A stretch of DNA of 64,000 bases from contig NC_043015.1 of NCBI RefSeq assembly GCF_006345805.1, forward strand, positions 33,046,001 to 33,110,000, in the 5' to 3' direction. Shown here piece by piece: positions 12,509 through 64,000 of this stretch (the first letter of the stretch is position 1; every line of letters begins with the position of its first letter). The DNA is from Octopus sinensis (lineage: Eukaryota). The translations under genes were made by a program, and so were the position numbers. The notes beneath the pieces were generated by a model. That model was not told where the DNA came from. It ran no database searches and saw nothing but the letters and a program-made list of their open reading frames with translations.

Positions 12509-12509
12509 C

Positions 12510-13445: not shown

Positions 13446-13550
13446 ATATATATGTATGTATATATATATATATATATATATGTGTGTATATATAATATAT
13501 ATATATGTATGTATGTATATATATATATATATATGTATATATATGAATGC

Positions 13551-13593
<43 letters not shown>

Positions 13594-14147: not shown

Positions 14148-14199
<52 letters not shown>

Positions 14200-14637: not shown

Positions 14638-14677
<40 letters not shown>

Positions 14678-14975
14678 TATGTAAACCTACCACTACATAT
14701 ACATATTTATAGATATGCTTACACACACACACACATATATATATACATACAAGTATATATACACATTTATATATAGATATTTTCAAATAATACATATATG
14801 TATACTTTATATATATATATATATATATATACATATATATAGATATACATACATATATAAACACACACACACACACATAGATATACACATATGCATATAT
14901 GTGTATTTGTATGTGTGTGTGTCCATCTATATATGTATGTAGTTCTATATGCCTGTAGTCATGTGTATATATATA

Positions 14976-15039
<64 letters not shown>

Positions 15040-16499: not shown

Positions 16500-17050
16500 T
16501 GTTTACATGGTTTGGTCATTTGACTGCAGTCATGCTAGAGCACCACCTTAAAGGGTTTTAGTCGAAGAAACCGACCCAAGGATTTATTCTTTGTAAGCCC
16601 AGTACTTATTCTGTCAGAGTCTTTTGTCGAACCGCTAAGTTATGGGAACAAAAACATACCAGCATTGGTTGTCAAGTGATGGGGGGAGGACAAACACAGA
16701 TACAAAGACACACATGCACACATAAATATATATATATATACATATATATATGACAGGCTTCTTTCAGTTTCCATCTACCAAATCCACTCACAAGGCTTTG
16801 CTCAGCTCGAGATTATAGTGCCATACAGTGGGACTGAACCTGGAACCATGTGGTTGGGAAGTAAGCTTCTTACCACACAGCCACACCTACACCTATATAT
16901 ACACAACAAGCTTCTTCCAGTTTCCATCTACCAAATACACTCGCAAGGCTTTGGTTAGCTCAGGGCTACAGTGGAAGACACTTACTCCAGCTGCCATGCA
17001 ATGGTATTGAACCCAAGAACACAGGTTGGGAAACAACCTCCTCAATTACA
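16500..17050 (-). mobile_element. SINE family B, one full copy plus a second 5' half in tandem
   Basis: cagtttccatctaccaaa...caaggctttg occurs twice (~16765 and ~16920). Confidence 0.8.
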
Positions 17051-23123: not shown

Positions 23124-23520
23124 ATTTTACAACAATGTTGTCATAGCAATAGAAATTTCGCTACAGTGTAGTCATGGCAACAGAGATTTTACTACAATGC
23201 ACTCAAAGCAACAGAGATTTTATTCCAATGTAGTCATAGCAACAGAGATTTTGCTACAGTGTACTCATAGCAACAGAGATTTTGCGGCAATATTGTCATA
23301 GTAACAGAGATTTTACTACAATGTAGTCATGGCAACAGAGATTTTACTACAATGCACTCAAAGCAACAGAGATTTTATTACAATGTAGTCATAGCAACAG
23401 AGATGTTACTACAATATTGTCATAGTAACAGAGATGTTGCTACTGTGCAGTCGCAGTGACAGAGATTTAGCGACAATGTAGTCATGACAACAAAAATTTT
23501 GTTACAATGAAGTCAGGGCA
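23124..23520. repeat. 31-bp minisatellite, ~13 units, carrying X-box-like motifs
   Basis: Consensus tgtagtcatagcaacagagattttactacaa. Motif starts fall at 23137, 23168, 23199 ... 23509 with an exact period of 31. Confidence 0.95.
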
Positions 23521-26550: not shown

Positions 26551-27188
26551 TAGAAGATAAAAGATAAAAGATGGTAGCATTGAATTAAAGAAAATTATTA
26601 CAGATGCGATGCTTATGGCCAAGCGTTCAGCAGAAATGTATAAAATATGGTTTGCTTCATTTGTCTGGGTTTTGAATAAAAGGAAAAATTTAATGGAGGA
26701 GGTTGTTATAATCATAAATCAATTGGAATAATATATTAAATGTAGGAAGAACGAAATGAGTAGGTGTTTAAATTGACAGAGAGATGTGAGACAGAATTAG
26801 AGTCATAATTTGTGTGTATGTATATAAGCATGTATGTGTGTATGTGATGTGTCATGTGTGTAGGTGTGTGTGTGAGTGGAGGGAAGGTGTAGATATGTCT
26901 GTTCGTCTTGAAAAAAGTGTCTTAGAATGGCACCAGAATATATGCAACTCTAAGGGATAAGAAATATTGGCTTCAAGTTTTGGCACAAGGCCAGCAATTT
27001 TGGAGGATGGTGTAAGTTGATTATATTAACCCCAGTGCTCAATGGGTACTAAAAGATGATAGGCAGAGTCGACTTTGGCAGAATTTAAATTCAGAACATG
27101 CCAGGCACAGTAACAATTCTACCTGCTCACCACCTTCGAAGACATTGAAATATCAACAACAGAGCAGAGGTTCAATCAATGAGTGCTC

Positions 27189-30161: not shown

Positions 30162-30670
30162 CTGTGCCGGTGGCACATAAAAAGCACCATCCAAACGTGG
30201 TCGATGCCAGCACCGCCTTGACTGGCTTCTGTGCCGGTGGCACATAAAAAGCACCATCCAAACGTGGTCGATGCCAGCACCGCCTTGACTGGCTTCTGTG
30301 CCGGTGGCATGTAAAAAGCACCATCTGAACGTGGCAGATGCCAGCGCCGCCTTGACTGTCTTCCGTGCCGGTGGCATGTTAAAAGCACCAACCGATCGTG
30401 GCCGCTGCCAGACTCCCCTGGCACCCTGTGCCGGTGGCACGTAAAAAGCACCCTGTGCCGGTGGCACGTAAAAAGCACCCTGTGCCGGTGGCATGTAAAA
30501 AGCACCCACTACACTCATGGAGTGGTTGGCGTTAGGAAGGGCATCCAGCTGTAGAAACACTGCCAGATCAGACTGGAGCCTGGTGCAGCCTCCTGGCTTC
30601 CTAGACCCCGGTCGAACCGTCCAACCCATGCTAGTGCGGAAAACGGACGTTAAACGATGATGATGATGAT
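30162..30670 (+). mobile_element. SINE-associated repeat family H with internal 67-bp x4 and 27-bp x3 tandem units and a (GAT)n tail
   Basis: ctgtgccggtggcac starts at 30162, 30229, 30296, 30363, 30426, 30453 and 30480. The tail ttaggaagggcatccagctgtagaaac recurs at 31240-31555, 36020-36215, 27510-27665(-), 45840-45945(-) and 46900-47000(-). Confidence 0.85.
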
Positions 30671-40671: not shown

Positions 40672-41515
40672 GGAATTGACAGATTAGTCAATCAAGAGAT
40701 CTGTGTGACTTTGAGTATACATCTATAGTATTTCTATAGACATATTCTCATAAACCCACATGACCAACAGATAGGTATGTAGGGAGAGATGGAGAGAGGG
40801 AGAGCAAAAGAGAGAGAGAGCAAGAGAGCGTGTGTTTCTGTGTGTGCATGAGTGTGCACGCATGCTAGTGAGAGAGTGTAGGGGTGCTAATTGAGAAATT
40901 AATCAATCAATCAAAGGATATATGGAGAGACTTATATGTTTTGGGATCATAAATATAAAGAAAAATGGAATTTACTGCTCTTCATGAGATTTAAGTTGAT
41001 TGAAAAATTAATTTTCAGTGCAGAGACTAAAAAGATTTATATATATATATACATGTAGTTAATTAATTAACTAAATAGTTAATTACATTATCAATTTCTT
41101 GTTTTCCTGGAAATGAGACACCCTTCTGTTTGTATATATGAAAATAATGCTGTGTAAGGAGTTGGTTAGTGTAAACAAAGTTGTTCCTACTTCGACTTTT
41201 GGCTTTCAAGAGATCTGTTTATGTATAAGAAAATAATGTTGCATGAGAAGTTGGTTAACGTAAACAAAGTTGTTCTTACCACAATTGTTGGCTTTCGAAA
41301 GATTGTAATAACAAAAAGACAAAACAAAAAGTGTATACATACATTTTTACCTCCACTTATTCACTAAGAGAATTGGATTTTTTTACTATGTAAGTAGAGA
41401 AGTTTAATCCTTTCATCTGATTATTTACTAGGGTTTTGCCATACATGGGTGATATATGAGTTCTTATGAAAACAAACGCAAAAACTTCATCTGAATCTAA
41501 ATTTTACTGAACTTA
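40672..41515 (-). pseudogene. Array unit U1 (no Myb exon, no exon A)
   Basis: Microexon at 41191-41214; exon B reads MYVYTFCFVFLLLQSFESQQL. Confidence 0.7.
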
Positions 41516-44880: not shown

Positions 44881-45775
44881 AGACTAAAGACATTTAGAGC
44901 CAAAAGTGATTTATGTATAAAGACACGTGTAGCTAATTAATTAATTAACTAAATATTCAATCGTGTATTCAATAACTGCATTCCTGGAGATCTAAACATA
45001 TAAGTCAGACACCTTTCTGCTTATATATGAGAAAATAATGCCACATGAGGAATTGGTTAGCGTAAACAAAGTCGTTCTTACCTCAATTGTTCAATTTCAA
45101 CAGATCTGTTTATGTATAAGAAAATAATGTCCCTTGAGAAGTTGATTATTGAAAACAAAGTCATTCTTACCTCAGTTGTCTGCTTTCAACAAATCGTAAT
45201 AATGCAAAGACAAAAAATCATATAAAGTGATCCCCTCCACCATATCGCAGTTCACCTATCGCGTTTATTATTTAAGCTTACAGGGATTCCTCCATGGTGT
45301 TGTTTTGTATTTATAATAAAATAAATATATAAAAATAATAGAAATAATTTTTTTTAATATACAGTACAGTACTGTTTCTACTTCACGGATTTCCACCAAT
45401 CGGAACATAACTCCTGTGACAGTCAAGGGATTACTGTATGTATGTTTTTGCCTGCTCTTAATGTGTAAGAGAACTGGACTTTTTACTGTCTAAGTAGGGA
45501 AGTTCCAATTGTTGGTGTTTATTATTCATCAGGGATTTTGCCACACGCGGATGATTTATGAGTTTTTACGTGAAGAAATACAAACTTTGCAATTTTCACT
45601 TTTCTACTGAAATTCTGTCTATGTAGGGTCTGAGTGTTTTCATAGTGTGTATTGTTACCTCAGGATACCATAAAGATTAGTTACCATGAAGTAGGGATGA
45701 TTTTCTGTGCAATTTTCTGAAAGGTGCTCAAGACAAAGTAAAGGCAAGTGCTGATGCAAGTCACCATCTTTGAAT
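44881..45775 (-). pseudogene. Array unit U2 (5' exons only; exon B interrupted by a MITE)
   Basis: Microexon at 45082-45105; the unit sequence resumes after 45439. Confidence 0.7.
45222..45439. mobile_element. Tc1/mariner (Tigger-like) MITE inserted in unit U2
   Basis: Ends taaagtgatcccc / gggattactgta at a TA; absent from the other units. Confidence 0.6.
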
Positions 45776-46700
45776 ATATATTCGTATGTATGTATGTATG
45801 TATGTATGTATGTATGTATGTATGTATGTATGTATGTATGTACACATCATCATCATTTAACGCCCGTTTTCTATGCTGGCATGGATTGTACGGTTCGACT
45901 GGGGTCTGGGAAGCCAGGAGGCTACACCAGGCTCCAATTTTTTCTTTTTTTGTTGCTTATATTCCACCAACGGACAACACGTGTGTTACTTCAGCATCAT
46001 TATTCTATAAAATGTGCTTAACGGGAGAAAAATATCGAAAAAGCATCAAAACATGTGAGGGTGAAAAGGAAGAGTGGTTTGGGCTGTGCTTGAAACAACA
46101 GCAAAACCGCCCTTGAATTCTTCACCATTTTTCTGAAAATATTTACGATTTGCTTTGTTTTTTAGTTTTTTTACTGAAAAGGCTTCTCCCATAGTTTTTA
46201 AGTTGAAAAGAGAAACGGCCAAAATCGGTCCCCATAGTTATTATTGTAAGGCCTATAGCATTCCAAACAGCTATAACAACAAAATAACTTCCAAATTTTT
46301 TTACAAAAATTATATGGGTATTTAAAAAAAGTCTTCATTCAATGAATAATGTTTTTACATTACGTATACATTAAGAGAATAAACTGTTCATTTTCTAAAT
46401 AGCGAATTAAAACTTAAACTAAAAATATTGAAAGAGAAAGTGAAACTTTGCAAATGAAAATGGAATACTCTGCAGTGAATGCAATGAATATTTAAATGTG
46501 TGAAGATTTGGACACAGTGAATGCAATGAATATATCTAAATATGCAAGAAATAGGAGTTAGAAAAATTCAGTAAAATTGAGAAATCAAAACTATAGGAAA
46601 TTTCTTAGAACATGAATTTATAAAACTATTTCCACACAATCAACCCTTTAATAATTGCTTTCTTTTAGTATACATACATGTGTATATATGTGTATATATG

Positions 46701-47520: not shown

Positions 47521-49130
47521 TTTGAGAAAGAAAGAAAGAGAGAGGGAGAGAGTGAGAGTGAGATACCAAGAGACAAAGAGAAACAGACAGGCAGAGAGCT
47601 AGAGAGAGAGAGAGTGTGTATACATGTGAGTGTATGTGTGTGCGTGTAAGCCTGCTAGAGAAAGTGTGAGGTGTGCTACGGGGAGAGAGACACGAGGAAG
47701 AGAGTGGAATCGAGAAATTAATCAATCAATCGCAGATTAAATCAAAGGGCATATCAGTGGAGAGACTTATACATTTTGGGATCGCAAATATGAAGAACAA
47801 CAAACTTTAATTCACTTCATTAAATTTCAGTTGACTGAAATATTAATTTAAAGCGCAAAGATTAAAAAAATTTTGACTGTAAAAACTTTTACATATAAAG
47901 ACACGTGTAGTTAATTAATTAACTAAACAATTAATTATGTAATCAGTTACTGGTTTCCTGGGAATCTAGATATATAAGTCAGACACATTTATGTTTATAT
48001 AGAAGCAAATAATGCTGTGTAAGGAGTTGGTTAGTGTAAACTACATTGTTCTTACCTCTCTTCTTGGCTTTCATCAGATCTGTGTATATATATATTTATA
48101 TAATAATAATAATAATGAAATTATTGTATACAGTGCTCAGGTACACCACAACTTGTCAAAAGTGCGTATAAAGAATATGCAGTAATGTACAAATGTCTGG
48201 GAAGTGAAGAGTGTATGAATCAGATACATGCCTACGTAGTAGGTGTAGTGTTGGCAAATCTCAGGAAGCATGGAAGTTTTGAAGGATGCAGTGCTCCGAC
48301 AACTAACGACTGATGCCGGCAGTTTGTTCCATGCTTCAGCAACTCTTAGCGTGAAAAAATGTTTCCAAATGTCATGGGAGCTGTGCTGCTTTCTGACTGT
48401 GTAAACATGTCCACGGGTGTTAGACAGGTGGAGTTTGAAAAGGTGCTCAGAGTTATTGTTAGCAAGATGGTTAATAATTTTATGGGTGTCTGTCAAGTCA
48501 GCTGCCAGACTTCGGAGTTTCAATGTATCCATGCCCAGAGAAGTAAGGCATTCAGAATATGGCAAATGCCTGATAGAGGGTATTCTCTTGGTTGCACATC
48601 GCTGAACAGCTTCCAGACGATTAATATCTTGGGCAAGATAGGAGTTCCAGACCGTTGATGCAAATTCCAGGTGAGGTCGCACCATAGCTATAAAAAGCCG
48701 CAGTTATATAACAAAATAATGCTGCGTGAGAAGTTGGTGAGTGTAAACAAAGTCACTCTTTCCTCAATTATTGGCTTTCAACAGATCGTAATGAGTAAAA
48801 GACAAAAAATTGTATAAATACATTTTTTCCTTCATTTATTCTCTAAGAAGATCAGATTTTTTACTGTGTTAAGAGGGAAGTTTTGATACCTGGTCTGATT
48901 ATTCACAGGGGTTTTGCCACACCTGGGTAATATATGAGTTTTTATGTAAATAAACACAAGATTCTTAATTTTCACTTTTCTACGAAAATTCAATGAAGTG
49001 TTTCAGCGTTTTCATAGGGTGTGTTATCACCTCAGGATAGAATAAAGATTGGCTACTATCTATTATTAGGGATTTTTTTGAAGATTTTCTTAAAGATTCC
49101 CAGGAAGAACTGAAAACACTTGCTATATAT
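47520..49130 (-). pseudogene. Array unit U3 (split by CR1; exon B donor and exon D acceptor mutated)
   Basis: Microexon at 48056-48079; the unit resumes at ~48700. Confidence 0.7.
48110..48690 (-). mobile_element. CR1-group LINE 3' fragment with (ATT)n tail
   Basis: ORF 48137-48685 reads VRPHLEFASTVWNSY...LEAVQRCATK...TRGH...FFTLRVAEAWNKLP. The same 3' tail occurs at 6440-6490 and 25800-25860. Confidence 0.9.
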
Positions 49131-50020: not shown

Positions 50021-50021
<1 letters not shown>

Positions 50022-50567
50022 TTATTCAAAAGGAATGAACCAATTTCATTATGCAATATTTTAATAAGGAAAAGCAATAGAAAACTCCAGTTAAGTCGCA
50101 AGAATTTACTCATAATCAACTTTTATTTCCTGTCTTGCAAGTCTTCAAATGTGGCCACCACCTGCAACACAGGCAACATCAATGCGATAAGAGAATTTCT
50201 CCCAGATGCATATCAGCATATCAGAATCCACTGAGTACTTCTTTGGTTGGCTGATTGAATGCTTTATCGAAGTTTTTCCATTTCCCTTCTATGTCAATAT
50301 CTTCTGGAACCAGCTCAAAGCAAAGCAAATTTATTCTTTAGTTCCATAATGAACTTGCTTTTGATATGCTGATACATGTCTGGGAGGAATTTCTTATCGC
50401 ATTGATGTTGCCCATGCTGCAGGTGGTGGCCACATTTGAACACTTGTAAGACAGGAAATAAAAGTTGATTGCGAGTAAATACTTGTGACTTAGCTGGAGT
50501 TTTCTATCGCTTTTTCTTATTAAGATATTGCGTAATGAAATCGGTTCATTCCGTTTGAATAACCCTG
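50021..50567. mobile_element. Tc1/mariner-type MITE with ~200-bp TIRs
   Basis: 50021-50222 is the reverse complement of 50362-50567. The right end reads gaataaccctg-TA; the left end is eroded by (GA)n. Confidence 0.85.
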
Positions 50568-50620
50568 TATATATATATACACACACAAACCCACGCATAT
50601 ATATACATATATATGCATAT

Positions 50621-50658
<38 letters not shown>

Positions 50659-50689
50659 GAATATATATATATGTATTTGCTTTTTTGGT

Positions 50690-51071
50690 GTTGATATTTG
50701 TTAGTTTTAGGACCATCAATGCTGGTGTCTTCTTCCATGGCAGATCTCACAATTTTAGTTTTTGTTTCAGAAGTGTTCCCTTGTGGAGCTGTATTGCCAG
50801 TGGAATGTCTGTTACTCACATCAGGGTCTCCATCCTTGTCATCCTTTTTGAGTTCCTGTGCAAAGATGGTGTTAAGTGTGTTAACGTGAGGGTTGATGAG
50901 GGCACAGGACCTGATCCACTCTTGTTTTTACAGCTCTATCTGAGCTATGGTCCTTATGTAGCCATTGTCCTTTAGACCTGCCATCATAATATTATGTGGA
51001 TTGTCTCCGTCGGCTATTTTCCACCATCTGAAAAAGAGTTTCAGTTCAGCGCTCAGCCAATTTCGAGACAT
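50690..51071 (-). pseudogene. Myb/SANT-like (trihelix) coding exon, one in-frame TAA at 50928-30
   Basis: MSRNWLSAELKLFFRWWKIADGDNPHNIMMAGLKDNGYIRTIAQIEL*KQEWIRSCALINPHVNTLNTIFAQELKKDDKDGDPDVSNRHST...; ORFs 50928-51143 and 50520-50819 share one frame. Confidence 0.65.
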
Positions 51072-52200
51072 CTTTAGTCTGCTGTTTCCTTCAATGTATT
51101 TAGAGAAATACTGAGATAGGGAGAGAAAAAGACAGAGAGACATAAAGTGTATTGATCTATGTGTGCACAGTTTAGAGGGGTATTAGTTGGGATAGGGACG
51201 AGATATCTGTGTGACTATCTATAAGCTTTCTGTGGACACATTCCTATAAACACACATGATCAATAGATAAGTATGTAGGGAGAGAGAGAGCGAGAGAGAG
51301 AAAGTAAGAGAAAGAGAGAGAGAGCAAAAGAGAGAGAGAGTGTGTGTGTGTACACGTGCATGTGGGGGGGGGTACAAGGAGAGAGACACTGGGGAAAGAG
51401 AGGAACAGAGAAATTAATCAATCGCAGATTAAATTAAAATGTATAAGAGTGGAGGGACTTTGGTATCGTAAATATAAATAAAAAACAGAATTTACTTCTC
51501 TTAGTAAAATTTAAGTTGATTGAAAAATGGAATCTAAGCATGGAACAAAAAGATTTATATATAAAGGCACATATAGGTAATTAATTAACCAAATAATTAA
51601 TTACATGTTCAATCACTGAATTCCAGAAAATTTAGATATACAGGTCGGACACCTGTTGGTTTATAGGTCAGAAACTAATATTGCGTGAGGAGTTGGTTAC
51701 TGTAAACAAAGTCGTTCTTACCTCAATTGTTCGCTTTCAACAGATCTGTTTATGTATAAGAAAATATAATGCCGCGTGAGATGTTGATTAGTGTAAACAA
51801 AGTTGTTGTTACTACAATTGTCTGCTTTCGACAGATCGTAATAACCAAAAGATGAAAAAAATTGTAAACATACATTTTTCCCTCACTTTTTTTCTAAGAG
51901 AATCCGATTTTTCAGTGGATAAGTAAGGAAGTTTCAATTCTTGGTCTGATTATTTACAGAGGTTTTGCCACACACAGGTAATATATATCAGTTTTTATGT
52001 AAACAAACATGAACTTTGTAATTTTCATTTTTCTACTGAAATTCTGCCTATGTAGTGTATTAGTGTTTTCGTAGTGTGTATTATCACCCCAGGATACAAT
52101 AAAGATTAGTTAACATGAAGTAGTAACGATTTTCTGTACAATTTTCTAAAAAACTTTCAGAACCAAGTGAAAATATGTGCTACCAGAAAGTCACCATCTT
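50690..52200 (-). pseudogene. Array unit U4, most complete copy
   Basis: Exons A, B, microexon (51722-51745), D and the Myb exon are all present. Confidence 0.75.
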
Positions 52201-52706
52201 GGAATATATATATTTATATATATATATATCTGTGTGTATGTGTAAATATAAAAATGGAACAAAAACGCAATAGAGGGCATTAAAACATTGGAACAAGATA
52301 GACGACACAAAGGCGGATAAGAGAAACAACAATAAGAAGGACAGGCAAAAAAAGACAAGTTGTTCTTGGTTTTCTTTCATCAGTCAAGTACCAGAAGTCA
52401 CGACCATTTCAGACAGTTACACTTGAGATGATTTAATCTGATTGTCCCCAAAAAGTCAAAGCTAAGAGCATTAGACCCCTTTGTAAGAAAGCTAGTGAAT
52501 GTTTACGGCAACAAAGATGAAAAAAAGACAAACAAATAAAAAAAAAACGGAGAACATGGTGCACAATTACGAATACAACAAGAAATAACAACAAGCGTCT
52601 TTCGACTGAGAATGTTTCAAACTGAGCTGGCATGTATGATATAAAACCCTAAAGGCAGGAACATGGGAGATGGACACAAGATGTGTTGACGGTCGGCAGT
52701 CAGGCC

Positions 52707-53895
52707 CTGAGCTGTGGTCCTTCTGTAGCCATTGCTCTTTAGAGCTGCAAAGATGATATTATTTGGATTGTCTCCTTCAGTTATTTTATCCACCCTTTTA
52801 GTAACAGTTTCAGTTCAGCACTAACCCAGTTTCAGGACACCTTTTGCCTGCTGTTTCTTCTTGTATATATTTAGAGAAATATTGAGATAAGGAGAGATAG
52901 GGAAACAGGAAGAAAGAGAGGTGTAAGTTGTATTTGATCTATGCATGCACAGATGGGAAGGACATTAGCTGGGATAGAGAAGCGAGATCTGTGTGACTTT
53001 GAGTATGTATCTATAATCTTTATATAGACATATTCCCATATACACATGTTAAATAGACAGGTACACAAGGAGAGAGTAAAAGAGAGTGAGCAAGAGGGAG
53101 ACAGAGCAAGAGAGTAAGAGAGAGAGTGTGTGCTTTGATTGAGAGAGAGTGTGGGTGGTGCTACACGGAGAGAGAGATACAGAAGAGAGTGGAATTGAGA
53201 AATTAATGAACCACTTGCAGATTAAATAAAAGAGCATAAGAAGTGGAGAGACTTATACGTTTTGGGATCGTAAATAGAAAGCAAAATGGAATTTACTTCT
53301 CTTCGTAAAATTTCAGTTGAATGAAAAATTAATTTTAAGTGCTGAGACTAAAAGGATATACAGCCTAAAAAGATTTGTAGACACACATGTAGTTAATTAA
53401 TTAATTAATTAACTAAATAATTAAGTACGCATTCAATTACTGCTTTCCTGGGAATCTAGATATATAAGTCAGACACATTTCTGTTTATATAGAAGCAAAT
53501 AATGCTGTGTAAGGAGTTGTTCCATGTAAGCAAAGTCATTCTTACCTCACTTGTTCACTTTCAGCAGATCTGTTTATAAGAAAATAATGCCACATGAGAA
53601 GTTGGTTTGTGTAAACAAAGTCATTCTTACCTCAACTGTTGGCTTTCGACAGATCGTAATAACTAAAACACAAAAAAATTGTATGCATACGTTTTTACCT
53701 CCACTTATTGTATAAGAGAATCGGATATTTTACTGTGTAAGTAGGGAAGTTTCTATCTTTGGTTCGATTTTTCACAGGGGTTTTTCCACACATGGTTAAT
53801 ACATAAGTTTTTAAGTAAACAAACTTAAACTTTGTAATTTTCACACATTTCTACGAAAATTCTTCTGATGTAGTGTTTTAGTGTTTTCATAGTGT
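52707..53895 (-). pseudogene. Array unit U5 (Myb exon truncated; cut by a SINE upstream)
   Basis: NWVSAELKLLLKGW / EGDNPNNIIFAALKSNGYRRTTAQ at 52707-52840; microexon at 53546-53569. Confidence 0.7.
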
Positions 53896-54200
53896 GAAGG
53901 CGCATGGCTCAGTGGTTAGAGTGTCGAGCTTACGATCGTGAGGTTGTGAGTTCAATTCCTGGACTGAGCTGTGTGTTGTGTTCTTGAGCAAGACACTTTA
54001 TTTCACGTTGCTCCAGTTTACTCAGCTGTAGAAATGGTGCCAAGCTGTATTGGCCCCTTTGCCTTTCCCTTGACATGGAGAGGGGAGGCCGGTATGCATG
54101 GGTGACTGCTGGTCTTCTATAAATAACCTTGCCTGGACTTGTACCTCGGAGGGTAACTTTCTAGGTGCAATCTCATGGTCATTCATGACTGAAGGGGTGT
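53896..54200 (+). mobile_element. tRNA-derived SINE (family F-related subfamily)
   Basis: ggcgcatggctcagtggttagagtg...gagttcaattcctgg...ttcttgagcaagacacttta. Confidence 0.85.
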
Positions 54201-54234
54201 CCCCCACCCACCAGTGTGTAGATGGTCTGCCAGT

Positions 54235-56130
54235 TCATCTTATATGACTGAGTGGACCACTTGTATTGGTGCTGGTAGGGCCATCAATGCTGGTGTTTTC
54301 TTCCTTGACATGTCTCTCAGTTTTAGTTTTTCTTTCAGATGTGTTCCCTTCTGGATCAGTAGGGTAAGGGGAACATCTGCTACTCACATCAGGGTCTCCA
54401 TCCTTGTCATCCTTTTTGAGTTCCTGTGCAAAGATGGTGTCAAGTGTGTTAATGTAAGGTTTGATGAGGGCACAGGAGCAGATTGACTCTTGTCTTTTTC
54501 CGTTCTGTCTGACCTTTGGTCTCTATGTTGCCATTGTCCTTCAGAGCTGCTGTTATGATATTATTTGGATTGTCTCCTACGGCTATTTGCCATCCACCCT
54601 CTCAGAGTTTCAGTTCATTACTGACCCAGGTTCAAGACATCTTTAACCTTCTGTACATATTTAGAGAAATATTGAGGTAAGGAGAGACAGGGAGAGAGAG
54701 GAAGAGAGACAGGTGTACGTTGTATGGATCTATGCGTGCAAAGGTGGGAGGGGTTTTAGCTGGAATAGGGAGGAGACATCTGTGTGACTTTGAGTATATA
54801 ACTATAATCTTTCTATAGACATATTCCCATACACGCACATGTTCAACAGATGGGTATACATGGAGAGGGAGAGAGAGAGGTTGAGTAAGAGAGATAGAGA
54901 GGGAGAGAGAGTATGTGTGCATGAGCGTGTGTGCATGGACACCTCCAAGAGAGTGGGGGAGAGTGCAATAGGGAGAGGCACGCAGGGGAGAAAGAGGACT
55001 TGAGAGATTAGTCAATCAAGAGATCTGTGTGACTTTGAGTATACATCTATAGTATTTCTATAGACATATTCCTATATACACATATGTTTGACAGATAGAT
55101 AGATAGCTAGAGAGAGAGAGAGAGAGAGAGAATGAAAGTGAGTGAGAGAGAGGGAGAGAGTGAAAGTGAGCGAGAGACAGACAGGCAGAGAGAGCAAGAG
55201 AAAGAGAGAGAGAGCAAGAGATAGAAAGAGTGTGTACGTGTGAGTATGTGCATAAATGCATGCTCGAGAGAGTGTGGGGGTGTTACAGTGAAAGACACAC
55301 AGGGGGCGGGGAGAGTAATTGAGAAATTAATCAACCAATCGCAGATTAAATCGAAGGGTTTAAGAGTGGAGAGATTTATATGTTTTGGGATCGTAAACAT
55401 AAAAAAAAAACAGAATTTACTTCTCTTCGTAAAATTTCAATTGGTTGAAAAATTAATTTAAAGTGCTGAGCCTTAAAAGATTTAGAATCTAAAAAGATTT
55501 ATATATATACAGACACATGTAGTTAATTAATGAACTAAATAATTAATTACATATTCAAGTACTGATTTCCTGGGAATCTAGATATATAAGTCAGACGCGT
55601 TTCTGTTTATATATGGGAAAATAATGCTGCATGAGGAATTGGTTAGCGTAAACAAAGTCATTCTTACCTCTCTTGTTCACTTTCAACAGATCTGTTTATG
55701 TATAAGAAAATATAACGCTATGTGAGAAGTTGGTCAGTGTAAAGAAAGTCATTCTTACCTCAATTGGCTTTCGACAGATCGTAATTTACAAAACACAAAA
55801 AAATTGCATACGTGCATTTTCCCCCCACTTATTCACTAAGAGAATCGGATTTTTACTGTGGAAGTAGGGAAGATTCGATCCCTGATCTGATTATTCACAC
55901 AGGTTTTGCCATGTGTGGGTAATATATAATTTTTAATGTAAACAATGACAAAGTAACTTTCGCACTTTTCTATGCAAATTCTATCTCCGTAGTGTTTTCG
56001 TAGTGTGCATTATTACCTCAAGATAGAATAAAGATTGGTTACCATGAAGAATTCATGATTCTCTACGCAATTTTCTTAAACATTTCCATGACAAGGTGTA
56101 AACACGTGCTATCAGCAAGTTCCCATCTTG
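54235..56130 (-). pseudogene. Array unit U6 (Myb exon 54235-54640 with two stops and a frameshift)
   Basis: MS*TWVSNELKL*EGGWQIAVGDNPNNIITAALKDNGNIETKGQ / SCALIKPYINTLDTIFAQELKKDDKDGDPDVSSRCSP...HIR*. Microexon at 55668-55691; introns of 65 and 67 nt. Confidence 0.75.
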
Positions 56131-56169
56131 ATATTTACACAAACACACACACACACAAAATTCATTACA

Positions 56170-57244
56170 ATGACAGATCTATTGGACTTTCTAAGAGGTC
56201 AAATTGTTGGTGCTCGTAAGGCAGGCGCTAACATAATGAAAATAGCAAAAATGTTTGGTGTATCAAGAAGTACTTTCTTGAAAGTAATGACAGCCTTTGA
56301 GAAAGAGGGAAAAACCTCCTCATCAAAACAAAACTCTTGAAGAAAACCAAAACTTTCTGATAGGGTTCTTACGTAAATTGTTAGAAAGGATCAAAAAATT
56401 ACTGCTCCCAAAATTACTGTAGAGCTTAATGACCACCTTGCAAACCCAGTTTCCATGAAAACTGTTTGCTGGGAGCTGCACAAAGCTGGATTTCACGGGA
56501 GGGCTGCAATCAGAAAACCACTACTTTCAAAAGCAAATGTTGAAAAGCATTTTGAGTGGAGTAAAAACCTACAGAATTGGTCCCTAGAGCAGTGGAAGAG
56601 TGTTATTTTCTCAGACAAGTCATCCTTTACCTTATTTCCCACCACCAGCCAAGTATACGTGTGGAGACAGCCAAAAGAAGCATTTGACCCCAAATGCCTT
56701 CTTCCCACTGTTAAACATGGAGGAGGATCTGTGTTGATCTTGGGGGCTATATCTTGGAAATTCACTGGCCCAACTGTTTCCCTTCATAGCAGAATTAATA
56801 GTCAAGACTATTTAAGCATTTTATCTTATCAAATTCATCCTGAGGTTGTGGAACTGTTTCCAGGGGAAAATGCAATCTTTCAGGAGGATAATGCACCAAT
56901 TCACACAGCTAAAGTTGTTACTGAATGGCACGAGGAACATTCTGGTGAAGTTGAACATCTTATCTGGCTGCTGCAGTCCCCAGATCTCAATATTATTGAA
57001 CATTTATGGTGCATTTTAGAAAAACATCTAAGGAGTCAATATCCTCCACCATCATCACTACAAGAACTGGAGACTGTTTTAGCTGAAGAATGGACAAAAA
57101 TTCCTTTGGAAACAATTCAAACTTTGTACGAGTTCATATCTCGTACAATTCAAACTGCAATTACTGCCAAAGGCAATCCTACCCCATATTAAAATAAATT
57201 TGTTTGAAATTTTAAGGTGTGTCCATTGTTTTGTCCAACTCCTG
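56170..57244 (+). mobile_element. Tc1-type transposon, transposase pseudogene (56170-57192), DD36E spacing
   Basis: HTH region from ATG 56170 in the same frame as ORF 56455-57192, with two in-frame stops. Motifs FSDKS, HGGGSV, QEDNAPIH and SPDLNIIE. The right TIR ends cctg-TA; the left TIR is lost. Confidence 0.92.
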
Positions 57245-57245
57245 T

Positions 57246-58112
57246 ATGTGTGCACAGGTGGGAGGGGGATTAGTTGGCGTGAGTCTATACCTTTATTCTT
57301 TCTAAACACATATTCCCATATTCACACATGTTCAACAGATAGGTATACAGGGAGAGGGAGAGAGCGAGAGAGAATGAAAGTAAGAGAGTGAGAATGAAAG
57401 TAAGAGAGAGGGAGCGAGAGAGAGTGTGTGGGTGGGTGGGTACCACAGTGAGAGAGAAACGGGTGCAGAGAAGGATTGAGAAGTTAATCAATGAACCACG
57501 GATTAAATTAAGTTGTATAAGAGTGGAGAGACTTATGTTTTGGGATCGTAAATATAAAGAGAAATGGATTGAAAAATGAATACAAAGTGCAGACCCTAAA
57601 AAGCTTTATATATAAAAACACTAATTAACTAAGTATTCAATTACAGCTTTCCCGGAAATCTAGATATATAAATTAGACGCCTCTCTATTTATAAATATTA
57701 AAATAATGCCATGTGAGGAGTTGTTTAGTGTAAACAAAGTCATTCTTACCTCAATTGTTCGCTTTCGATAGATCTGTTTATGTATAAGAAAATAATGCCA
57801 CATGAGAATTTGGTAAGTGTAAACGAAGTCGTTCTTAACCTAATTGTTGGCTTTCGGGAGATTGTAGCAACAAAAGGACAAAAACATTGTATAGATACTC
57901 TTTTCTATCAAAATATTCTCTAAGAGAATCAGATTTTTTACTGTATAATTAGGGAAGGTTCGATCCTTGGCCTGATTATTCTTGGGGTTTTTGCCACAAG
58001 TGGGAGAGAATGAAGATCCATTACCATGATGTACTAACAATTTTCTAAGCAATTTTCTTACAGATTTCCTGGACAAAGTGAAAACACTTGCTATCAGCAA
58101 ATGACCATCTTC
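57246..58112 (-). pseudogene. Array unit U7 (Myb exon absent; internal deletion)
   Basis: Microexon at 57750-57773. Confidence 0.7.
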
Positions 58113-58365
58113 AAATATATATATATACACATACACACACACACACATATATATATATACATATATATACACACACATACACACACATACACACACATAT
58201 ATATAAATACATATATATATATATATAGATATATATATATATATATACACACATGTATATACACTATATATAATCACCCCAAGGATTTTTATGGATAACA
58301 CCATACAGAATTCTGGTGCATCTAAATTAAGTACCATATTCATTTGAATCTAAATTTTTGCTGAA

Positions 58366-58405
<40 letters not shown>

Positions 58406-58423
58406 TATATATACATATATATA

Positions 58424-58472
<49 letters not shown>

Positions 58473-58506
58473 GTACGTATATATGTAAATATGTATATAT
58501 ATATAT

Positions 58507-59060
58507 ATTAGAGGTTCCAGAAAATTCTGTGCATTTTTAAGCTATATATTTTAACGCTTCATTAAACACACCTGAAACGTAACACAGTTAAAACTTTGGC
58601 GTTGCTTGAAGTGATAATGCATCTCTTCTTTGTTCCTGACTAAAAACAGATTTGTCTTTCATTCCGGTTACCCTTTATTGATATTTGAAATGAATAACCA
58701 AAAAGTTCATATTCTCGTTGCAATGCTTTACCTTTTCAAAAAAAGGAGGAAGTTCTTCAAAGACTTGCAAAAACATTTGTGAAGGTTATGGTGATGATGA
58801 TGCTGCAGGTGAATCAACTATTCAAAGGTGGTTTGCAAAACTTGAAGCTGATGTATTTATCTTGGAAGGTGAGTTGTGTGAGAGGATCTTCAAAATTGGA
58901 TGAAGATGTTTTCAAGGCAAAACTCAAATATCACGACTACAGAACTTGCAGAGGAGATGGAAATTTCTAAAAGTACAGCTCATAAACACCTGGTGAAGCT
59001 AGAATACCATTTTGTAGTGTAACGCTTCAGGAAGTGCTACACTACAAAATGGTGTCATTC
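58507..59060 (+). mobile_element. Mariner remnant, 5' end with HTH
   Basis: Left end ttagaggttccagaaaattctgtgcatttt; peptide KTCKNICEGYGDDDAAGESTIQRWFAKL resembles the Mos1/Hsmar1 N-terminal HTH. Confidence 0.75.
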
Positions 59061-59229
59061 AAATATGTTAAACCTTCATTCCTCCTCTCAAGCGGTTCGG
59101 CAAAAGAGACCGATAGAATAAAGTACTAGGCTTACAAAGAATAAGTGTTGGGGGAGATTTGCTCGACTAATGGCGGTGCTCCAGCATGGCCACAGTCAAA
59201 TGACTGAAACAAGTAAAAGAATAAAAGAG

Positions 59230-59261
59230 TATATACACACGTGTTCAACATATAGGTATGC

Positions 59262-59316
<55 letters not shown>

Positions 59317-60250
59317 CAGATAGACAGAGACAGAGCGAGAGAGTGAGAGTGAGAGAGACACAGAAAGAGAGAGCAAATGAGAGAGACAGAAAGGGAAAGC
59401 AAAAGAGAGAGTGTGTAGATGTATGTTTGTGTGTGTGCATGCACGCCTGCTAGAGAGAGTGTGGGTGGTGCTACAAGGAGAGAGAGGAATGGAGGAATTA
59501 ATCAATCACACGTTAAATCGATGGGTATAATGGTGGAGAGACTTATATGGTTTGGGATCATAGATATAAAGAAAAACGGAATTTACTGCTCTTCATAAAA
59601 TTTCAGTTGATGGAAAAATTAATTTAAAGCACCGGCTAAAAAGATTTAGAGCCTAAAAAGATTTATATATAAGGACATGTTTAGTTAATTAATTCATTAA
59701 CTATAGAGTTAAATTACATATTTAATTACTGCTTTCCTGGAAATCTAAATATATAAGTCAGACACCTATCTGTTTATATATAAGAAAATAATGCTATGTG
59801 AGAAGTTGGCTAGTGTAAACAAAGTTATTCTTACCTCAATTGTTCAATTTCAACAGATCTGTTTATAAGAAAATAAAGCCACATGAGGAGTTGTTTAGCG
59901 TAAACAAAGTCGTTCTTACCTCAATTGTTGGCTTTTGATATTGTAATAATCAAAAGACAAAAAAAAAATTGTATACATACGTTTTTTCCTCCACTTATTG
60001 TCTAAGAGAGTCGGATTTTTTATTGTTTCAATCTCTGATCTGATTATTCACGCAGATTTTGCCCCACATGGGTGATATGCAAGCTTTTATGTAAACAAAC
60101 ACAAATCTTTATAATTTTCACACTTTTCTACAAAAATTCTACCTCTGTAGTGTTTCAATGCTTTTGTAGTGTGTATTATTACCTCACGATAGAATAAAGA
60201 TTGTTACCATGAAGTATTAATGATTTTCTACACAATTTTCTTAATATGAA
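59230..60250 (-). pseudogene. Array unit U8 (no Myb exon)
   Basis: Microexon at 59835-59858. Confidence 0.7.
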
Positions 60251-60266
60251 TGTGTGCATATGTATG

Positions 60267-60347
<81 letters not shown>

Positions 60348-60641
60348 ACATAGGTATATATATTGAGAAAGAGGGAGGTCAGAATTTTGAATAATTCTGT
60401 ATTAGTGCTTTCTTTCACTTATTGAATTTGTCAAGACAAAATTAAAATGGTAAAAACAGAATGTTTTGTTGAATTAAATGTTTGTTTTACTTTGATTAGA
60501 TGAGAAAAATATTTGGGTTTTTTTGGGGGAAAACGGGGGAAAGAGAGAAAGAAAAGCAAAGAGGGTGAGAAAAATAGACAGAGAGAGAGGTTTCAAGACA
60601 ATCAAGAACGAGGGGGAAATAATGAAGGATGGGGAATGGAC

Positions 60642-60726
<85 letters not shown>

Positions 60727-60879
60727 TATAGACAGACGGACAGATAAATAGAGAAAGAGAAAAAGAGAGGGAGAAAGAGAGGTTTCTTTTCAATTTGATT
60801 TGGTCAACCCATTGAAATTTCATTACAAAGCATTTTTCTTTTTACTTCTTTATTTTCTCTTCTTGCAATCCAAATAACT

Positions 60880-60930
60880 TTTCTCGAGCCATATTCCCAT
60901 ATATACACATGTTCCAGAGATAGGTATACA

Positions 60931-60969
<39 letters not shown>

Positions 60970-61500
60970 CGAGAGAACAAGAGTGAGAGAGCAAGAGAGA
61001 GAGACAGAGAGAGAGAACAAGACAGACAGATAGAGAACAAAAGAGAGTGAGAGGGAGAGCAAAAGGGAGTGTGTAAGTAGCTATGTGTGTGTGCACATGT
61101 AGATGTGCTAGAGAGTGTGGATGGGGTGCTACAAGAAAAGATACAGATTAAATATCAAAGGATGTAACGGTGGAGAGACTTATATATTTTGGCATCGTAA
61201 ATATAAAGAAAAATGGAATTTATTTCTCTCCGTAAAATTTCAGTTGATTGAAAAATTAATTTAAAGCACAGAGACTAAAGACATTTAGAGCCAAAAAAAA
61301 AATTATATATAAAGGCATGTGTAGTTAATTAATTAATTAAATAGTTAATTACCTACTCAAATACTACTTTCCTACTCAAATACACCTTTATATATGAGAA
61401 AATATTGCTGCTTGAGGCAACAGTGAACAGAAAGTCATTCTTACCTCGGTTGTTCACTTTCAAGAGATCTGTTTCTATATAAGAAAATAATGCCGCATGA
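60880..61500 (-). pseudogene. Array unit U9 (truncated upstream of the microexon)
   Basis: Microexon at 61445-61468. Confidence 0.65.
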
Positions 61501-61573
61501 GTAGTGTGTGTGTATGTGTGTGTGTGTGTGCATGTATGTATGTATATATATATAATATATATATATAATATAT

Positions 61574-61621
<48 letters not shown>

Positions 61622-61843
61622 TATATATATTTATATAAATAGCTGTATATGTATATATCTATATAGGTATACATTTATATGTGTACATATACATACATAC
61701 ATACATACCAATATATATACCAATACATATATATATATATATCAGATGCAGAAATAAATTTTTTATTCTCAAATACATGATAATGCTAATAAAATAGCAA
61801 GAACAGGATAAATTATCCATACATTGCAGAAAAATACGTCACC

Positions 61844-61915
61844 AGCCAGCCAGGAGACTTGAACTCACATCCCTGTGATTACACGTCAAGTGCTTTACGA
61901 TTAAGCTAAACTGCC
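61844..61915 (-). pseudogene. Degenerate tRNA-like sequence, Thr(TGT)-like
   Basis: GGCAGTT TA GCTT AATCGTA AAGC A CTTGA CGTGTAA TCACAG GGAT GTGAG TTCAAGT CTCC TGGCTGGC. The D stem is perfect; the anticodon, T and acceptor stems are mismatched. Confidence 0.5.
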
Positions 61916-61999
61916 CAGTAACGAATTCTTCTGCAATTTTAGAACTTATAAATTTAGCTTCATAAGACATTAACATTAAATTCAATGCTAGTGTGTGCA

Positions 62000-62300
62000 G
62001 GGCGGTGTAATGTGGTGTGGTGATGTGTGGTGTGTTGTGTTGTGGTGGTATGTGGTGTGGTAGTGTTAGGGTGGGGGGATGCGAGGGTGGGGGATGCAAG
62101 GGTGGGGTGTGTTGTAGTGATGAGGTGTGGGGTTGAGATGTGTAGTGGTGGGGTGTGGATGGAGGGGTTAGCGATGAAGAGAGGTGGAAGGGAGAAGGTG
62201 GGTAGGAATAAAGAGAGGAAGTAGGTGTCAGAGCAAGAGAGAAGAAGTGGGTGTGAAGAGAGGAGAGAGGAGGGGTGTTGAGCCCATGTGGTGCAAAGGA
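62000..62300 (+). repeat. (TGTGG)n and G-rich low-complexity tract
   Basis: gggtggggggatgcgagggtgggggatgcaagggtgggg; the minus strand of this tract produces ORF 61839-62534. Confidence 0.85.
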
Positions 62301-62309
62301 GTGAAGAGA

Positions 62310-62530
62310 GAAGATTAATTCCTGTTCACGGCGATGATGGAAATCTGGATGGCCCCTGTGCAAGGACAATCTGAACACGTATAGTTCAGGAGTGAATCTT
62401 GAAAATATTTGGTCAGAAGAACCACAAAAATTGACCCTTTGAATGTGGAGACTGTTTGGACACAGGAGAAGAGAGAAGAGTCGGGTCATCTGTTTGAGGA
62501 GAGTGGCATGCAGATACTTGCTCTCTAAGA
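62310..62530 (-). mobile_element. Possible decayed LINE ORF2 3' fragment
   Basis: Only weak resemblance of the peptide (SDQIFSRFTPELYVFR) to CR1/Jockey C-termini. Confidence 0.3.
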
Positions 62531-62599
62531 ACACAGAATTCTACATGATGATCCCATGAAGAGAGTGATAATTGGAAAAAGGAGCCAGTTCATCCCCAC

Positions 62600-63035
62600 A
62601 TCAGCAGTAAGGATCATGGCTGGTGCTGCAGTGGGAGGAGGAGGAGGAGGTTTTGTGTACAGTGCAAGAGCCAGTTTGTTAGTGAGGACCTGTCTCTCCA
62701 CGAGTGTTGAGGGTAACCATCAATGGAAACCCAAGGCTGACAGTCAGCTCAGCCTATAGTCCAACCAAGGGGGCACAGTGTGAGTGCAGAGGAGTTCCAT
62801 GCGAAAATAACACAGAGGAAACTGAAGCTAGCTGGACATGCTCCCTATAATTCAGAGTTGATACTGAACTCAGTGCTCCTGTGGGAGCCCCTACATGGAC
62901 ACACTAGAAGAGGGAGACTGAGGATGACATATGCTGATGCCCTAAGGACAGACGCTGGTCTCTGGGAGATGCAGGACATAGCAGCGATGATGATGGACAA
63001 GGACTGCCGGAGAGAACTTGTTTATGGAGTCGGGA
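62600..63035 (+). mobile_element. Internally deleted RTE-clade LINE (endonuclease fragment joined to the 3' end)
   Basis: RVLRVTINGNPRLTVSSAYSPT (APE domain) is followed directly by KITQRKLKLAGH...LLWEPLHGHTRRGRLRMTY. Confidence 0.75.
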
Positions 63036-63048
63036 ATTTTTCCTGCCC

Positions 63049-63120
<72 letters not shown>

Positions 63121-63199
63121 TGTGTATGTATATATATTTATACACACACACATATATATAAACATATATATATATATACATATATGTATATATATTTGC

Positions 63200-63701
63200 T
63201 CTTTTGTCCTGTTTGGTGTTGGTATTGGTGCTGGTAGGGCCATCAGTGCTGGTGTCTTATTCCTTGGCAGGATTTAGTTTTTATTTCAGATATGTTCCCT
63301 TGAGGATCAGTAGGGCCAGGGGAATGTCTGTCACTCACATCACGGTCTCGATCCTTCTCCTTCTTTGGCTATTTACCATCCTCTTAATAAAAGTTTCAGT
63401 TCAGTACTGACCAAATTCCAATACATCTTTAGACTGTTTCACGTCCTGTGCCAATATAGCTCGGAGAGGTCTAAGCTATATTGATCTGTGCATGCACAGG
63501 TGGGGGAGGGAGGATATTAGTTGGAATAGGGAGGAGACCTCTGTGTGACTTTGAGTATATAACTATAATCTTTCTATAGACATATTCCTATATACACATA
63601 TGTTTAACAAGGAGAGAGAGAGAGTGAGAAAGCAAGAGACAGACAGAGAGTGAGATTGAGAGAAAGAATGAGAGTGAGTGTATGTGTGTGTGTTTGTGTT
63701 T

Positions 63702-63739: not shown

Positions 63740-64000
63740 CGTACACGTGCTAGAGAGAATGTTGTGGGGTGCTATAAGGGGAGTGAGAAGAATTGAGAAA
63801 CTAATCAATTAATCGCAGATTAAATCAAAGGATATAATTGGCGGAGAGACATTTATGTTTTGGGATCGTAAATAGAAAGCAAAACTGAACTTACTGATCT
63901 TCGTAAAATCTCAGTTGTCTGAAAAATTAATTTAAAAAATCAGAGCCTAGAAAGATTTATATATATAAATACACATGTAGTTAATTAAGTAATTATCTAA
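63200..64000 (-). pseudogene. Array unit U10 (Myb exon 63200-63426 internally deleted; the unit runs off the window)
   Basis: MYWNLVSTELKLLLRGW*IA, then a jump to the DVSDRHSPGPTDPQGN region. Confidence 0.7.

Follow-up and report, generated by a model that had tools for sequence, protein, structure and literature searches.

Four broken copies of a short reading frame in a tandem array

The stretch analysed here (the window) comprises 64,000 nucleotides of Octopus sinensis contig NC_043015.1 (positions 33,046,001 to 33,110,000) and is AT-rich eukaryotic DNA (GC fraction of about 0.35) with many microsatellites and transposon fragments. Between positions 40721 and 64000 it holds a decayed tandem array on the minus strand, consisting of about ten head-to-tail units of 1.6-2 kb with pairwise identities of 75-82%, which extends past the end of the window and is interrupted by later transposon insertions. 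Four of the units have kept a copy (c1 to c4) of a short open reading frame (ORF). A preliminary description of this DNA had taken the ORF to be the last exon of a gene encoding a Myb/SANT-like DNA-binding domain, possibly derived from a PIF/Harbinger transposon, domesticated and then amplified in tandem. We identify it here as the first ORF (ORF1) of a family of long interspersed nuclear elements (LINEs) of octopods.

On the minus strand the order within a unit is a region of about 800 bp (region A), a short (CA)n followed by a CT-rich stretch of 200-400 bp, the ORF1 relic of about 400 bp and a (TG/TA)n tract; in the units other than the four mentioned, the ORF1 part has been deleted or replaced. 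All four copies lie on the minus strand, are colinear and are broken, and both tblastn and the translations found them where they had been described before, with translations that agree with the consensus given at the time. Copy c1 (50673..51071) is a relic of 133 codons from its ATG, has one in-frame TAA after codon 47 and terminates at the start of a (TA/TG)n tract. Copy c2 (52707..52840) retains the N-terminal 44 codons or so; its ATG has become GTG, codon 3 is a stop and the frame shifts once. Homology stops at 52707, the remainder having been deleted. Copy c3 (54238..54640) has nearly the full relic length, with in-frame stops at codons 3 and 13 and one frameshift, and a different repeat (53930-54207) abuts its 3' end. 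Copy c4 (63213..63426) retains the ATG but is stopped at codon 18, has lost about 190 bp internally and is shifted in frame. The junction of c4 with the (TA/TG)n tract is the same, to the base, as that of c1, and since both copies enter the microsatellite at this base the ancestral unit must already have had the ORF cut at about codon 125.

The broken copies were searched as separate pieces and not translated through their stops. Within the window, tblastn with the pieces of c1 and c3 gave matches to the four known sites only (for instance, piece A to c3 with E 2.8e-13 and to c2 with E 1.9e-9, and piece B to c3 with E 1.3e-21 and to c4 with E 9.5e-9) and no fifth copy of the relic. The four window pieces, being too short and too decayed, matched no Pfam family at E <= 10. 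A word-indexed protein search produced no candidates for the 71-aa ORF or the 95-aa piece of c3, since relatives with 60% identity escape its 5-mer seeding and its length window, and an Rfam scan of the window gave no match.

Copies c1 and c3 differ to much the same extent at each of the three codon positions (24/27/24 at 129/129/128 sites), and the ORF (80.5% identity) is no better conserved than the sequence directly upstream of it (76%). In view of this even spread, the window copies have diverged neutrally since the unit multiplied; a comparison among the copies, as proposed before, thus revealed drift and not selection, and four broken, drifting copies do not make a domesticated gene. The notion of a last exon of a multi-exon gene did not hold either, as the ORF begins at its own ATG directly behind the CT-rich leader and the remaining 800 bp or so of the unit is closed in all six frames. 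Region A was also considered as a set of upstream exons and rejected, its consensus containing 11-22 stops in each frame.

Intact relatives in Octopus

From the N-terminal pieces of c1 to c4 (alignment A3) we built a hidden Markov model (HMM) of 44 positions and compared it with 1.84 billion representative proteins. In eight of these the full profile was matched in one stretch; the matches comprised P0002 (E 4e-13), P0003, P0004, P0013 and P0027, which are 137-228 aa long, and the fragments P0009, P0020 and P0022. Those with a name are XP_036366487.1 of O. sinensis and 'hypothetical predicted proteins' of O. vulgaris, while read assemblies without assignment account for four hits and a metagenome scaffold for one. 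Three further relatives, all from O. vulgaris, came out of a follow-up search. In BLASTP the pieces of c1 were colinear with P0002 (61% identity over 46 aa, E 1e-19, and 41% over 64 aa, E 3e-8), which together with the E-value of the profile match puts the signal beyond chance. As far as these libraries show, the ORF family is confined to octopods. Proteins matching the profile in multiple stretches (P0001, P0005-P0008 and others) were DUF4116 or RCC1 repeat proteins and were discarded as spurious, because many matches of 13-17 residues to 'NIIxAALKxNG' pile up in them.

In the relatives the domain is one uninterrupted coding stretch, present once per locus, which begins at the annotated start (one codon after the start in the O. 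sinensis model), and the relatives are spread in a repeat-like manner over at least six chromosomes. Uninterrupted copies, which it had been suggested to look for, therefore do exist in Octopus, as ORF1s of a transposon; the lack of any intact copy, named before as grounds for refuting the preliminary description, does not apply. One of them (P0027, 153 aa) lies intact and with a CT-rich leader on ENA metagenome scaffold ERZ23491055 (L007, 963 bp); the sample, environmental or associated with a host, presumably contained DNA of a cephalopod.

ORF1 of an octopod LINE

At six long loci (L001 to L006) and on an unassigned read-assembly contig (L013), a second ORF (ORF2) was found on the same strand, 70-1100 bp downstream of ORF1. 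Since L001 and L004 are orthologues (91-95% identity), the six long loci represent five independent ones. ORF1 and ORF2 are located at 11039-11680 and 12121-14823 in L001, at 10001-10372 and 11124-13842 (mapped matches) in L004, at 10001-10366 and 11149-13801 in L005, at 26644-27063 and 28178-29454 in L006, and at 469-821 and from 1312 onwards in L013. The other two loci are deletion derivatives that join the two ORFs: L002 (ORF1 at 10001-10234, ORF2 at 10472-11486) has an internal deletion and keeps only residues 565-908, the 3' third of ORF2, and in L003 (10001-10675 and 10745-10906) ORF1 runs in frame into the C-terminal 54 residues of ORF2. In L004 an ORF at 10001-10510 is followed by a broken endonuclease/reverse transcriptase (RT) ORF at 10701-13872, an intact 915-aa copy of which lies just upstream (6951-9698). 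The 915-aa protein matches RVT_1 (E 3.7e-30) and Exo_endo_phos_2 (E 1.1e-11) in Pfam and human L1 ORF2p (E 3e-21) and R2 proteins in the PDB, and is, judged by these similarities, the ORF2 of a retrotransposon without long terminal repeats (a non-LTR retrotransposon); the ORF2 of the Octopus LINE family matches PF14529 and PF00078.

The two ORFs have also diverged together: L002 and L005 form the closest non-orthologous pair in both (86.5% identity in ORF1 and 82.9% in ORF2, with 71-76% in ORF2 for the other pairs). A CT-rich leader of 300-800 bp, to which the CT-rich stretch of the window units corresponds, precedes ORF1 in L001, L002, L005, L006, L007 and L013, and of seven related LINE copies all but one have a (TA)n/(TACA)n tract 44-103 bp past the stop of ORF2. 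The tracts that end the c1 and c4 relics are of the same type as this 3' tail. Given the constant order and strand of ORF1 and ORF2, their co-divergence and the deletion derivatives that join them, we firmly conclude that the ORF called 'Myb-like' represents the ORF1 of a LINE family of octopods, and neither the second ORF of a Harbinger element nor a domesticated host gene.

If the Myb-like second ORF of some PIF/Harbinger transposon had given rise to a domesticated host gene with the present ORF as its last exon, and this gene had later been amplified in tandem, the tandem arrangement would be accounted for, and so would the weak but exclusive similarity, described below, to Pfam family PF13837, to which the Harbinger Myb-like proteins, NAIF1 and the MSANTD proteins belong. 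At every relative locus that reaches far enough downstream, however, the ORF precedes the endonuclease/RT ORF2 of a LINE (six out of six long loci, and L013), whereas no DDE_Tnp_4 transposase adjoins any of the copies and terminal inverted repeats (TIRs) were not found. Co-divergence and fusion of ORF1 and ORF2, the dispersal of the relatives over the chromosomes, the neutral decay of all window copies in an otherwise non-coding unit and the fact that the only DDE transposase in the array belongs to an unrelated Tc1/mariner insertion point the same way, and we consider such a domesticated gene extremely improbable.

It could also be argued that the ORF is a host gene, or a fragment of one, that was picked up by the LINE family or inserted repeatedly beside it, as several copies are annotated as protein-coding by NCBI and ENA and neither Myb-like nor CCCH domains are among the published types of ORF1 domains. 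Such an origin is very unlikely: order, strand and spacing are constant at the five independent loci and in L013, ORF1 and ORF2 have a common subfamily structure, the homology of the leader starts upstream of the ORF, directly after the tail of the preceding element, and wherever the flank was long enough no LINE-free copy was seen. The gene models concerned (XP_036366487.1, CAI9735850.1, CAI9728256.1, CAI9729350.1 and the models behind P0037-P0039, at L001 10001-11440 and in L002-L006) are LINE ORF1s or pieces thereof, some of them stretched over 20-29 kb by spurious introns.

For the window itself, the four copies very probably derive, as relics without activity, from the 5' end of a LINE of octopods and lie in an array of about ten units that has decayed neutrally. 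Several observations weigh against this interpretation. The ORF2 of this LINE is absent from the window (the only tblastn match of the 915-aa ORF2 is an unrelated fragment with 31% identity at 48455-48697), so that the window copies are fragments rather than elements, and their identity as LINE sequences is carried by the homology of ORF1 (about 60% at the amino acid level) and by the common CT-rich leader. Moreover, they lack the 3' part, whereas LINE copies are normally truncated at the 5' end, and an internal deletion or an origin other than retrotransposition is needed to explain this. Region A was without counterpart in the approximately 180 kb of Octopus loci fetched, both by sensitive blastn and with an nhmmer profile of seven of its copies. 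Finally, the LINE is placed by its ORF2 as a non-LTR family at a level above that of a clade; the PF14529-type endonuclease and the microsatellite tail presumably suggest the CR1/L2/Jockey group. RTE-2_OV, the LINE of the octopus brain, was considered as this family and ruled out, being a single-ORF RTE element (PMC9115989).

Selection on ORF1

The LINE family as such bears the mark of selection. Differences in the ORF1 domain between L002 and L005 are distributed as 7/6/18 over the codon positions, with a ratio of non-synonymous to synonymous substitution rates (dN/dS) of 0.15; synonymous changes are saturated in the other subfamily comparisons, for which the distributions are 24/11/43 (L001 and L003) and 22/22/42 (L001 and window copy c1). 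The domain was thus under purifying selection while the LINE family diversified. In the orthologues L001 and L004 the ORF (90% identity) is no better conserved than the flanks (91-95%), indicating that individual insertions were dead on arrival or soon after.

The N-terminal three-helix domain

The conserved part of the ORF is about 70 aa long, with the pattern W-x3-E-L-x2-(L/F)-L-R-A-W-x-I-A-x-G-x-x-P-N-x-I-I-x-A-A-L-K-x-N-x-F, which continues as -x-R-T-x-A-Q-I-E-R-K-K-x-E-x-x-R-S-Y-A-L-I-R-P-H-x-x-T-L-D. In all scans against the 24,736 Pfam models, PF13837 (Myb_DNA-bind_4) was the sole family at E < 0.1, and its matches always spanned profile positions 2 to 68-72 of 89. It was found in three of the eight intact relatives (E 0.004-0.022, 15.6-17.9 bits) and in five of 14 alignment rows (best E 0.0011), in each case below the gathering cut-off of 27 bits. 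With a consensus of the eight intact relatives, built from these only, the match improved to E 2.5e-4 (21.8 bits), as expected for true remote homology.

AlphaFold2 predicted, with confidence, a core of three helices with a long helix 3. For the domain only, the mean predicted local distance difference test (pLDDT) was 83.3 and the predicted template modelling score (pTM) 0.66, with 44 residues at 90 or above; for full-length P0002 with the 14-row alignment, 56 residues had a pLDDT >= 90. Helices extend over residues 7-19, 25-35 and 42-60, with a fourth at 63-75, and the full-length model agrees. Among the solved structures that superpose best are the GT-1 trihelix domain of Arabidopsis (2jmw; template modelling (TM) scores 0.54/0.51), chain L of a spliceosome (7dvq_L, which we believe to be the Myb repeat of CDC5L; TM 0.53, root-mean-square deviation 2.0 A over 57 columns, probability 0.75) and the SANT domain of SMRT (4a69_C; TM 0.41/0.48), none with a significant Foldseek E-value.

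As the only family at E < 0.1, PF13837 makes remote homology likely, whereas formal membership is not demonstrated. The Myb/SANT-like assignment of the preliminary description therefore stands as a resemblance in sequence and in predicted fold, and not as a match at the Pfam threshold. We consider it probable that the domain is remotely homologous to the Myb/SANT trihelix domains. Against this it must be said that the score for PF13837 reached the threshold in no case, that the best E-values of Foldseek against the PDB were 0.76-0.83, none of them significant, that homeodomains score nearly as high (TM 0.45-0.48) as the trihelix and Myb structures, and that the PDB, searched by sequence with the N-terminal profile, with the family alignment and with the consensus, gave chance matches or none.

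These observations may be read as those of an unrelated or new helical module, a helix-turn-helix or homeodomain-like bundle mimicking the Myb_DNA-bind_4 pattern, the more so as the window pieces themselves are without any Pfam match, calmodulin lobes turned up in the same Foldseek lists as the homeodomains, and a tryptophan that we take to be conserved in helix 3 of trihelix domains is absent. Such mimicry is rather unlikely, because one family out of 24,736 is hit repeatedly over the same span of the profile, the E-value improves with the family consensus, and the best-superposing structures include GT-1, the founding trihelix protein, as well as SANT and Myb domains. The likeness to GT-1 and PF13837 lies in the three helices with a long third one (predicted, for the octopus domain), in W-x3-E-x2-L in helix 1 and in G-[FY]-x-R-[ST]-x2-Q-x3-K...Y leading into helix 3. 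The differences lie in the low score, in the fourth helix, in the tryptophans of helices 2 and 3, which, relative to what we take to be the trihelix consensus, are replaced by I/L and K/F, and in the host molecule, a retrotransposon protein and not a transcription factor.

Full-length ORF1 compared with known systems

Full-length ORF1 encodes about 230 aa (P0013, with open pieces in L001, L004, L005 and L007) and is arranged as the N-terminal three-helix domain, a linker rich in S, T and E (the S/T/P/E-rich tail noticed before in the window copies), a basic stretch and a C-terminal CCCH-like knuckle. The knuckle, CKFYLKGxCWHGxxGxNCRFAH, has an unusual spacing (C-x7-C-x8-C-x3-H); the criterion that we applied for CCCH fingers was C-x7-8-C-x4-5-C-x3-H at or above the Pfam threshold, and zf-CCCH (PF00642) matched the knuckle with E 0.021 and 0.068 (15.2 and 13.6 bits, cut-off 20.5). 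The motif is present in L001 (11441-11689), L004 (10492-10620), L005 (twice, 10621-10691 and 16614-16753) and L007 (858-962) and degraded in L006 and L013; the window copies stop near codon 125, before this region.

In several respects the ORF resembles other LINE ORF1s. It is the first of two ORFs, behind a 5' untranslated region (5'UTR) and upstream of an ORF2 with apurinic/apyrimidinic endonuclease (APE) and RT; it is modular and fast-evolving; and it is small, with a zinc knuckle and a basic region that would be suited to nucleic-acid binding. It is unlike them in its modules, a Myb/SANT-like three-helix domain and a CCCH-like knuckle. LINE ORF1 proteins were reportedly classified in five types by Khazina and Weichenrieder in 2009. 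Published modules of ORF1 include RRM, the CCHC knuckle, a coiled coil with a C-terminal domain (Transposase_22), PHD, esterase and zinc finger/leucine zipper, and a survey of 448 elements of the Jockey superfamily holds no occurrence of Myb, SANT or CCCH (Metcalfe and Casane, 2014, PMC4120745). We searched the literature for LINEs with a Myb-type ORF1, without any relevant result. The combination found here is absent from the ORF1 typologies searched and appears mildly novel.

Myb-type modules are known from other mobile elements. The Myb-like proteins of Harbinger elements, which are transposon-encoded accessory DNA-binding proteins, belong to the same Pfam neighbourhood (Myb/SANT-like) as NAIF1 and the MSANTD proteins. 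The partner of the octopus ORF1 is an endonuclease/RT and not a DDE_Tnp_4 transposase, and the element ends in a microsatellite tail, without TIRs. The N-terminal zinc finger and Myb motifs of R2 and the Myb-like domain of TRAS1 are part of the RT-bearing protein and bind 28S rDNA and telomeric repeats, respectively; we know of Myb-like motifs in these RT-bearing proteins and of none in any ORF1. The octopus elements are similar in having a Myb-type module in a protein of a non-LTR retrotransposon and in adjoining (TA/CA)n, head to tail, and differ in that the module resides in ORF1 and in that any preference for a target is inferred only.

The remainder of the array unit

The CT-rich leader of c1 (51150..51398, minus strand) lies directly upstream of the relic and is read as a LINE 5'UTR. 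Equivalent leaders precede the other relics at about 52900-53116, 54700-55300 and 63479-63693, and leaders that now lack an ORF1 part are found at 57308-57534, 59230-59386, 60890-61053, about 47560-47740 and 40721-40845, all on the minus strand. Region A of the c1 unit (51399..52203, minus strand) is contiguous with the leader and consists of about 800 bp of non-coding DNA with an internal duplication of 89 bp; further copies on this strand lie at 53117-53896, 55311-56130, 57713-58111, 59477-60241, 61188-61501 and 63859-63992, and at 47682-48092 plus 48707-49050, 44901-45722 and 40940-41477. The c1 relic is terminated by a (TG)n(TA)n tract at 50520..50650, the equivalent of which after c4 lies at 63022-63181, and microsatellites of similar type bound region A at 52204-52250, 58088-58540, 60254-60394 and about 45780-45850.

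We considered whether region A might be the 3'UTR of the LINE, for which the short (CA)n at its junction with the CT-rich leader could be taken as an indication. This junction is conserved unit sequence, unlike a variable tail, and lends such a reading no support. In L002 and L005 the 5'UTR of the family reaches 1-1.2 kb and its 5' portion is not CT-rich, and for this reason region A may be the distal 5'UTR of the window's own LINE subfamily; alternatively, it is non-LINE DNA.

Origin of the array

Two O. vulgaris loci (L004 6951-13872 and L005 10001-19727) each contain two LINE copies head to tail with only a (TA/CA)n tract between them. The tract, which measures about 1 kb in L005, leads directly into the 5' leader of the second copy. 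Such pairs suggest that the elements insert into microsatellites or into their own tails. It is possible, albeit doubtful, that the window array arose in a similar manner, by serial retrotransposition of a short non-autonomous derivative (5'UTR, ORF1 codons 1-125 and a (TA)n tail) into the tail of the previous copy. This would agree with the existence of deletion derivatives of this LINE (L002 and L003), with the head-to-tail elements just described, with the (TA)n/(TACA)n ends of six of the seven related copies and the same type of tract, identically joined, in c1 and c4, with the start of the units right after a microsatellite and with pairwise identities between units that, in a self-comparison of the window, are star-like. 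Many LINEs, however, need their 3'UTR for reverse transcription, and none is recognisable in the unit; all units start at the same point, without the typical 5' truncation of LINEs, and in the approximately 180 kb of Octopus loci neither a dispersed unit nor region A was seen.

Because of this common starting point, the missing 3'UTR and the lack of a dispersed copy in these loci, we favour unequal exchange or replication slippage, which would have taken place between microsatellites flanking a LINE fragment with a deleted 3' part. After the multiplication the units would have decayed neutrally, the ORF1 part being lost from most of them by deletion or through insertions, those of Tc1/mariner among them. 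With a unit of 1.6-2 kb that has a transposon part and is present about ten times, in one orientation, old and decayed, the array resembles transposon-derived macrosatellites, from which it differs by the approximately 800 bp of DNA of unassigned origin (region A) that the unit also holds.

Other features of the window

A relic of a Tc1/mariner transposase (56128-57192, plus strand) occupies exactly the place where the ORF1 part of one unit belongs; its 245-aa ORF (56455-57192, plus strand) matches the Pfam families DDE_3 (E 2e-10) and HTH_Tnp_Tc3_2. In the gap of another unit (58718-59022, plus strand) short ORFs have, by eye, the look of a mariner-type helix-turn-helix ('IQRWFAKLEAD...'). 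Region A of one unit is split by a C-terminal RT fragment of a different LINE (48137-48697, minus strand), with 31% identity to residues 732-812 of the L004 ORF2. A 231-aa ORF at 61839-62534 (minus strand) has a proline/histidine-rich part and a 'REQELIFSLHSFAPHGLN' motif resembling the GIY-YIG endonuclease of Penelope-type elements, and is adjoined on the opposite strand by a LINE-tail-like ORF (62780-63000, plus strand); Pfam gave nothing for either. Just 3' of c1 lies an inverted repeat of 206 bp (50021-50226 and 50359-50563, 89% identity, spacer of about 130 bp), which could be an element similar to miniature inverted-repeat transposable elements or a local palindrome.

Outside the array we noted a GC-rich tandem repeat at 30162-30452 (67 bp x 4.4) that resembles a short interspersed nuclear element, a minisatellite at 23124-23515 (31 bp x 12.6) and two (AT)n arrays that each approach 900 bp in length (11252-12118 and 14147-15034).

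Implications for octopod LINEs

As transposon debris of an ordinary kind, lying in an old tandem array, the feature in the window is to be masked and not annotated as a gene, and the gene models XP_036366487.1, CAI9735850.1, CAI9728256.1, CAI9729350.1 and those behind P0037-P0039 should be re-labelled as LINE ORF1. The domain make-up of the octopod ORF1 is a further case of the known modular shuffling of ORF1.

By analogy with other LINEs, the ORF1 protein (ORF1p) would bind and package the RNA of the element through its basic region and knuckle, and ORF2p would nick the DNA and reverse-transcribe. The Myb-like domain might then act as a nucleic-acid-binding module, possibly for the (TA/CA)n DNA beside the elements; as both ends of the element abut (TA/CA)n tracts, it may, speculatively, recognise the DNA of the integration site. 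That ORF1p, with a sequence-specific Myb/SANT domain and a CCCH knuckle, directs new copies to (TA)n/(CA)n microsatellites or to the tail of the element itself is a long shot at present. If true, it would explain why LINE copies lie head to tail in L004 and L005, and perhaps the window array as well, and would mean that the target is selected by ORF1 rather than by ORF2. LINE activity in cephalopod genomes has drawn interest, and a link between the predicted DNA-binding domain of ORF1 and insertion beside microsatellites in these genomes can be tested.

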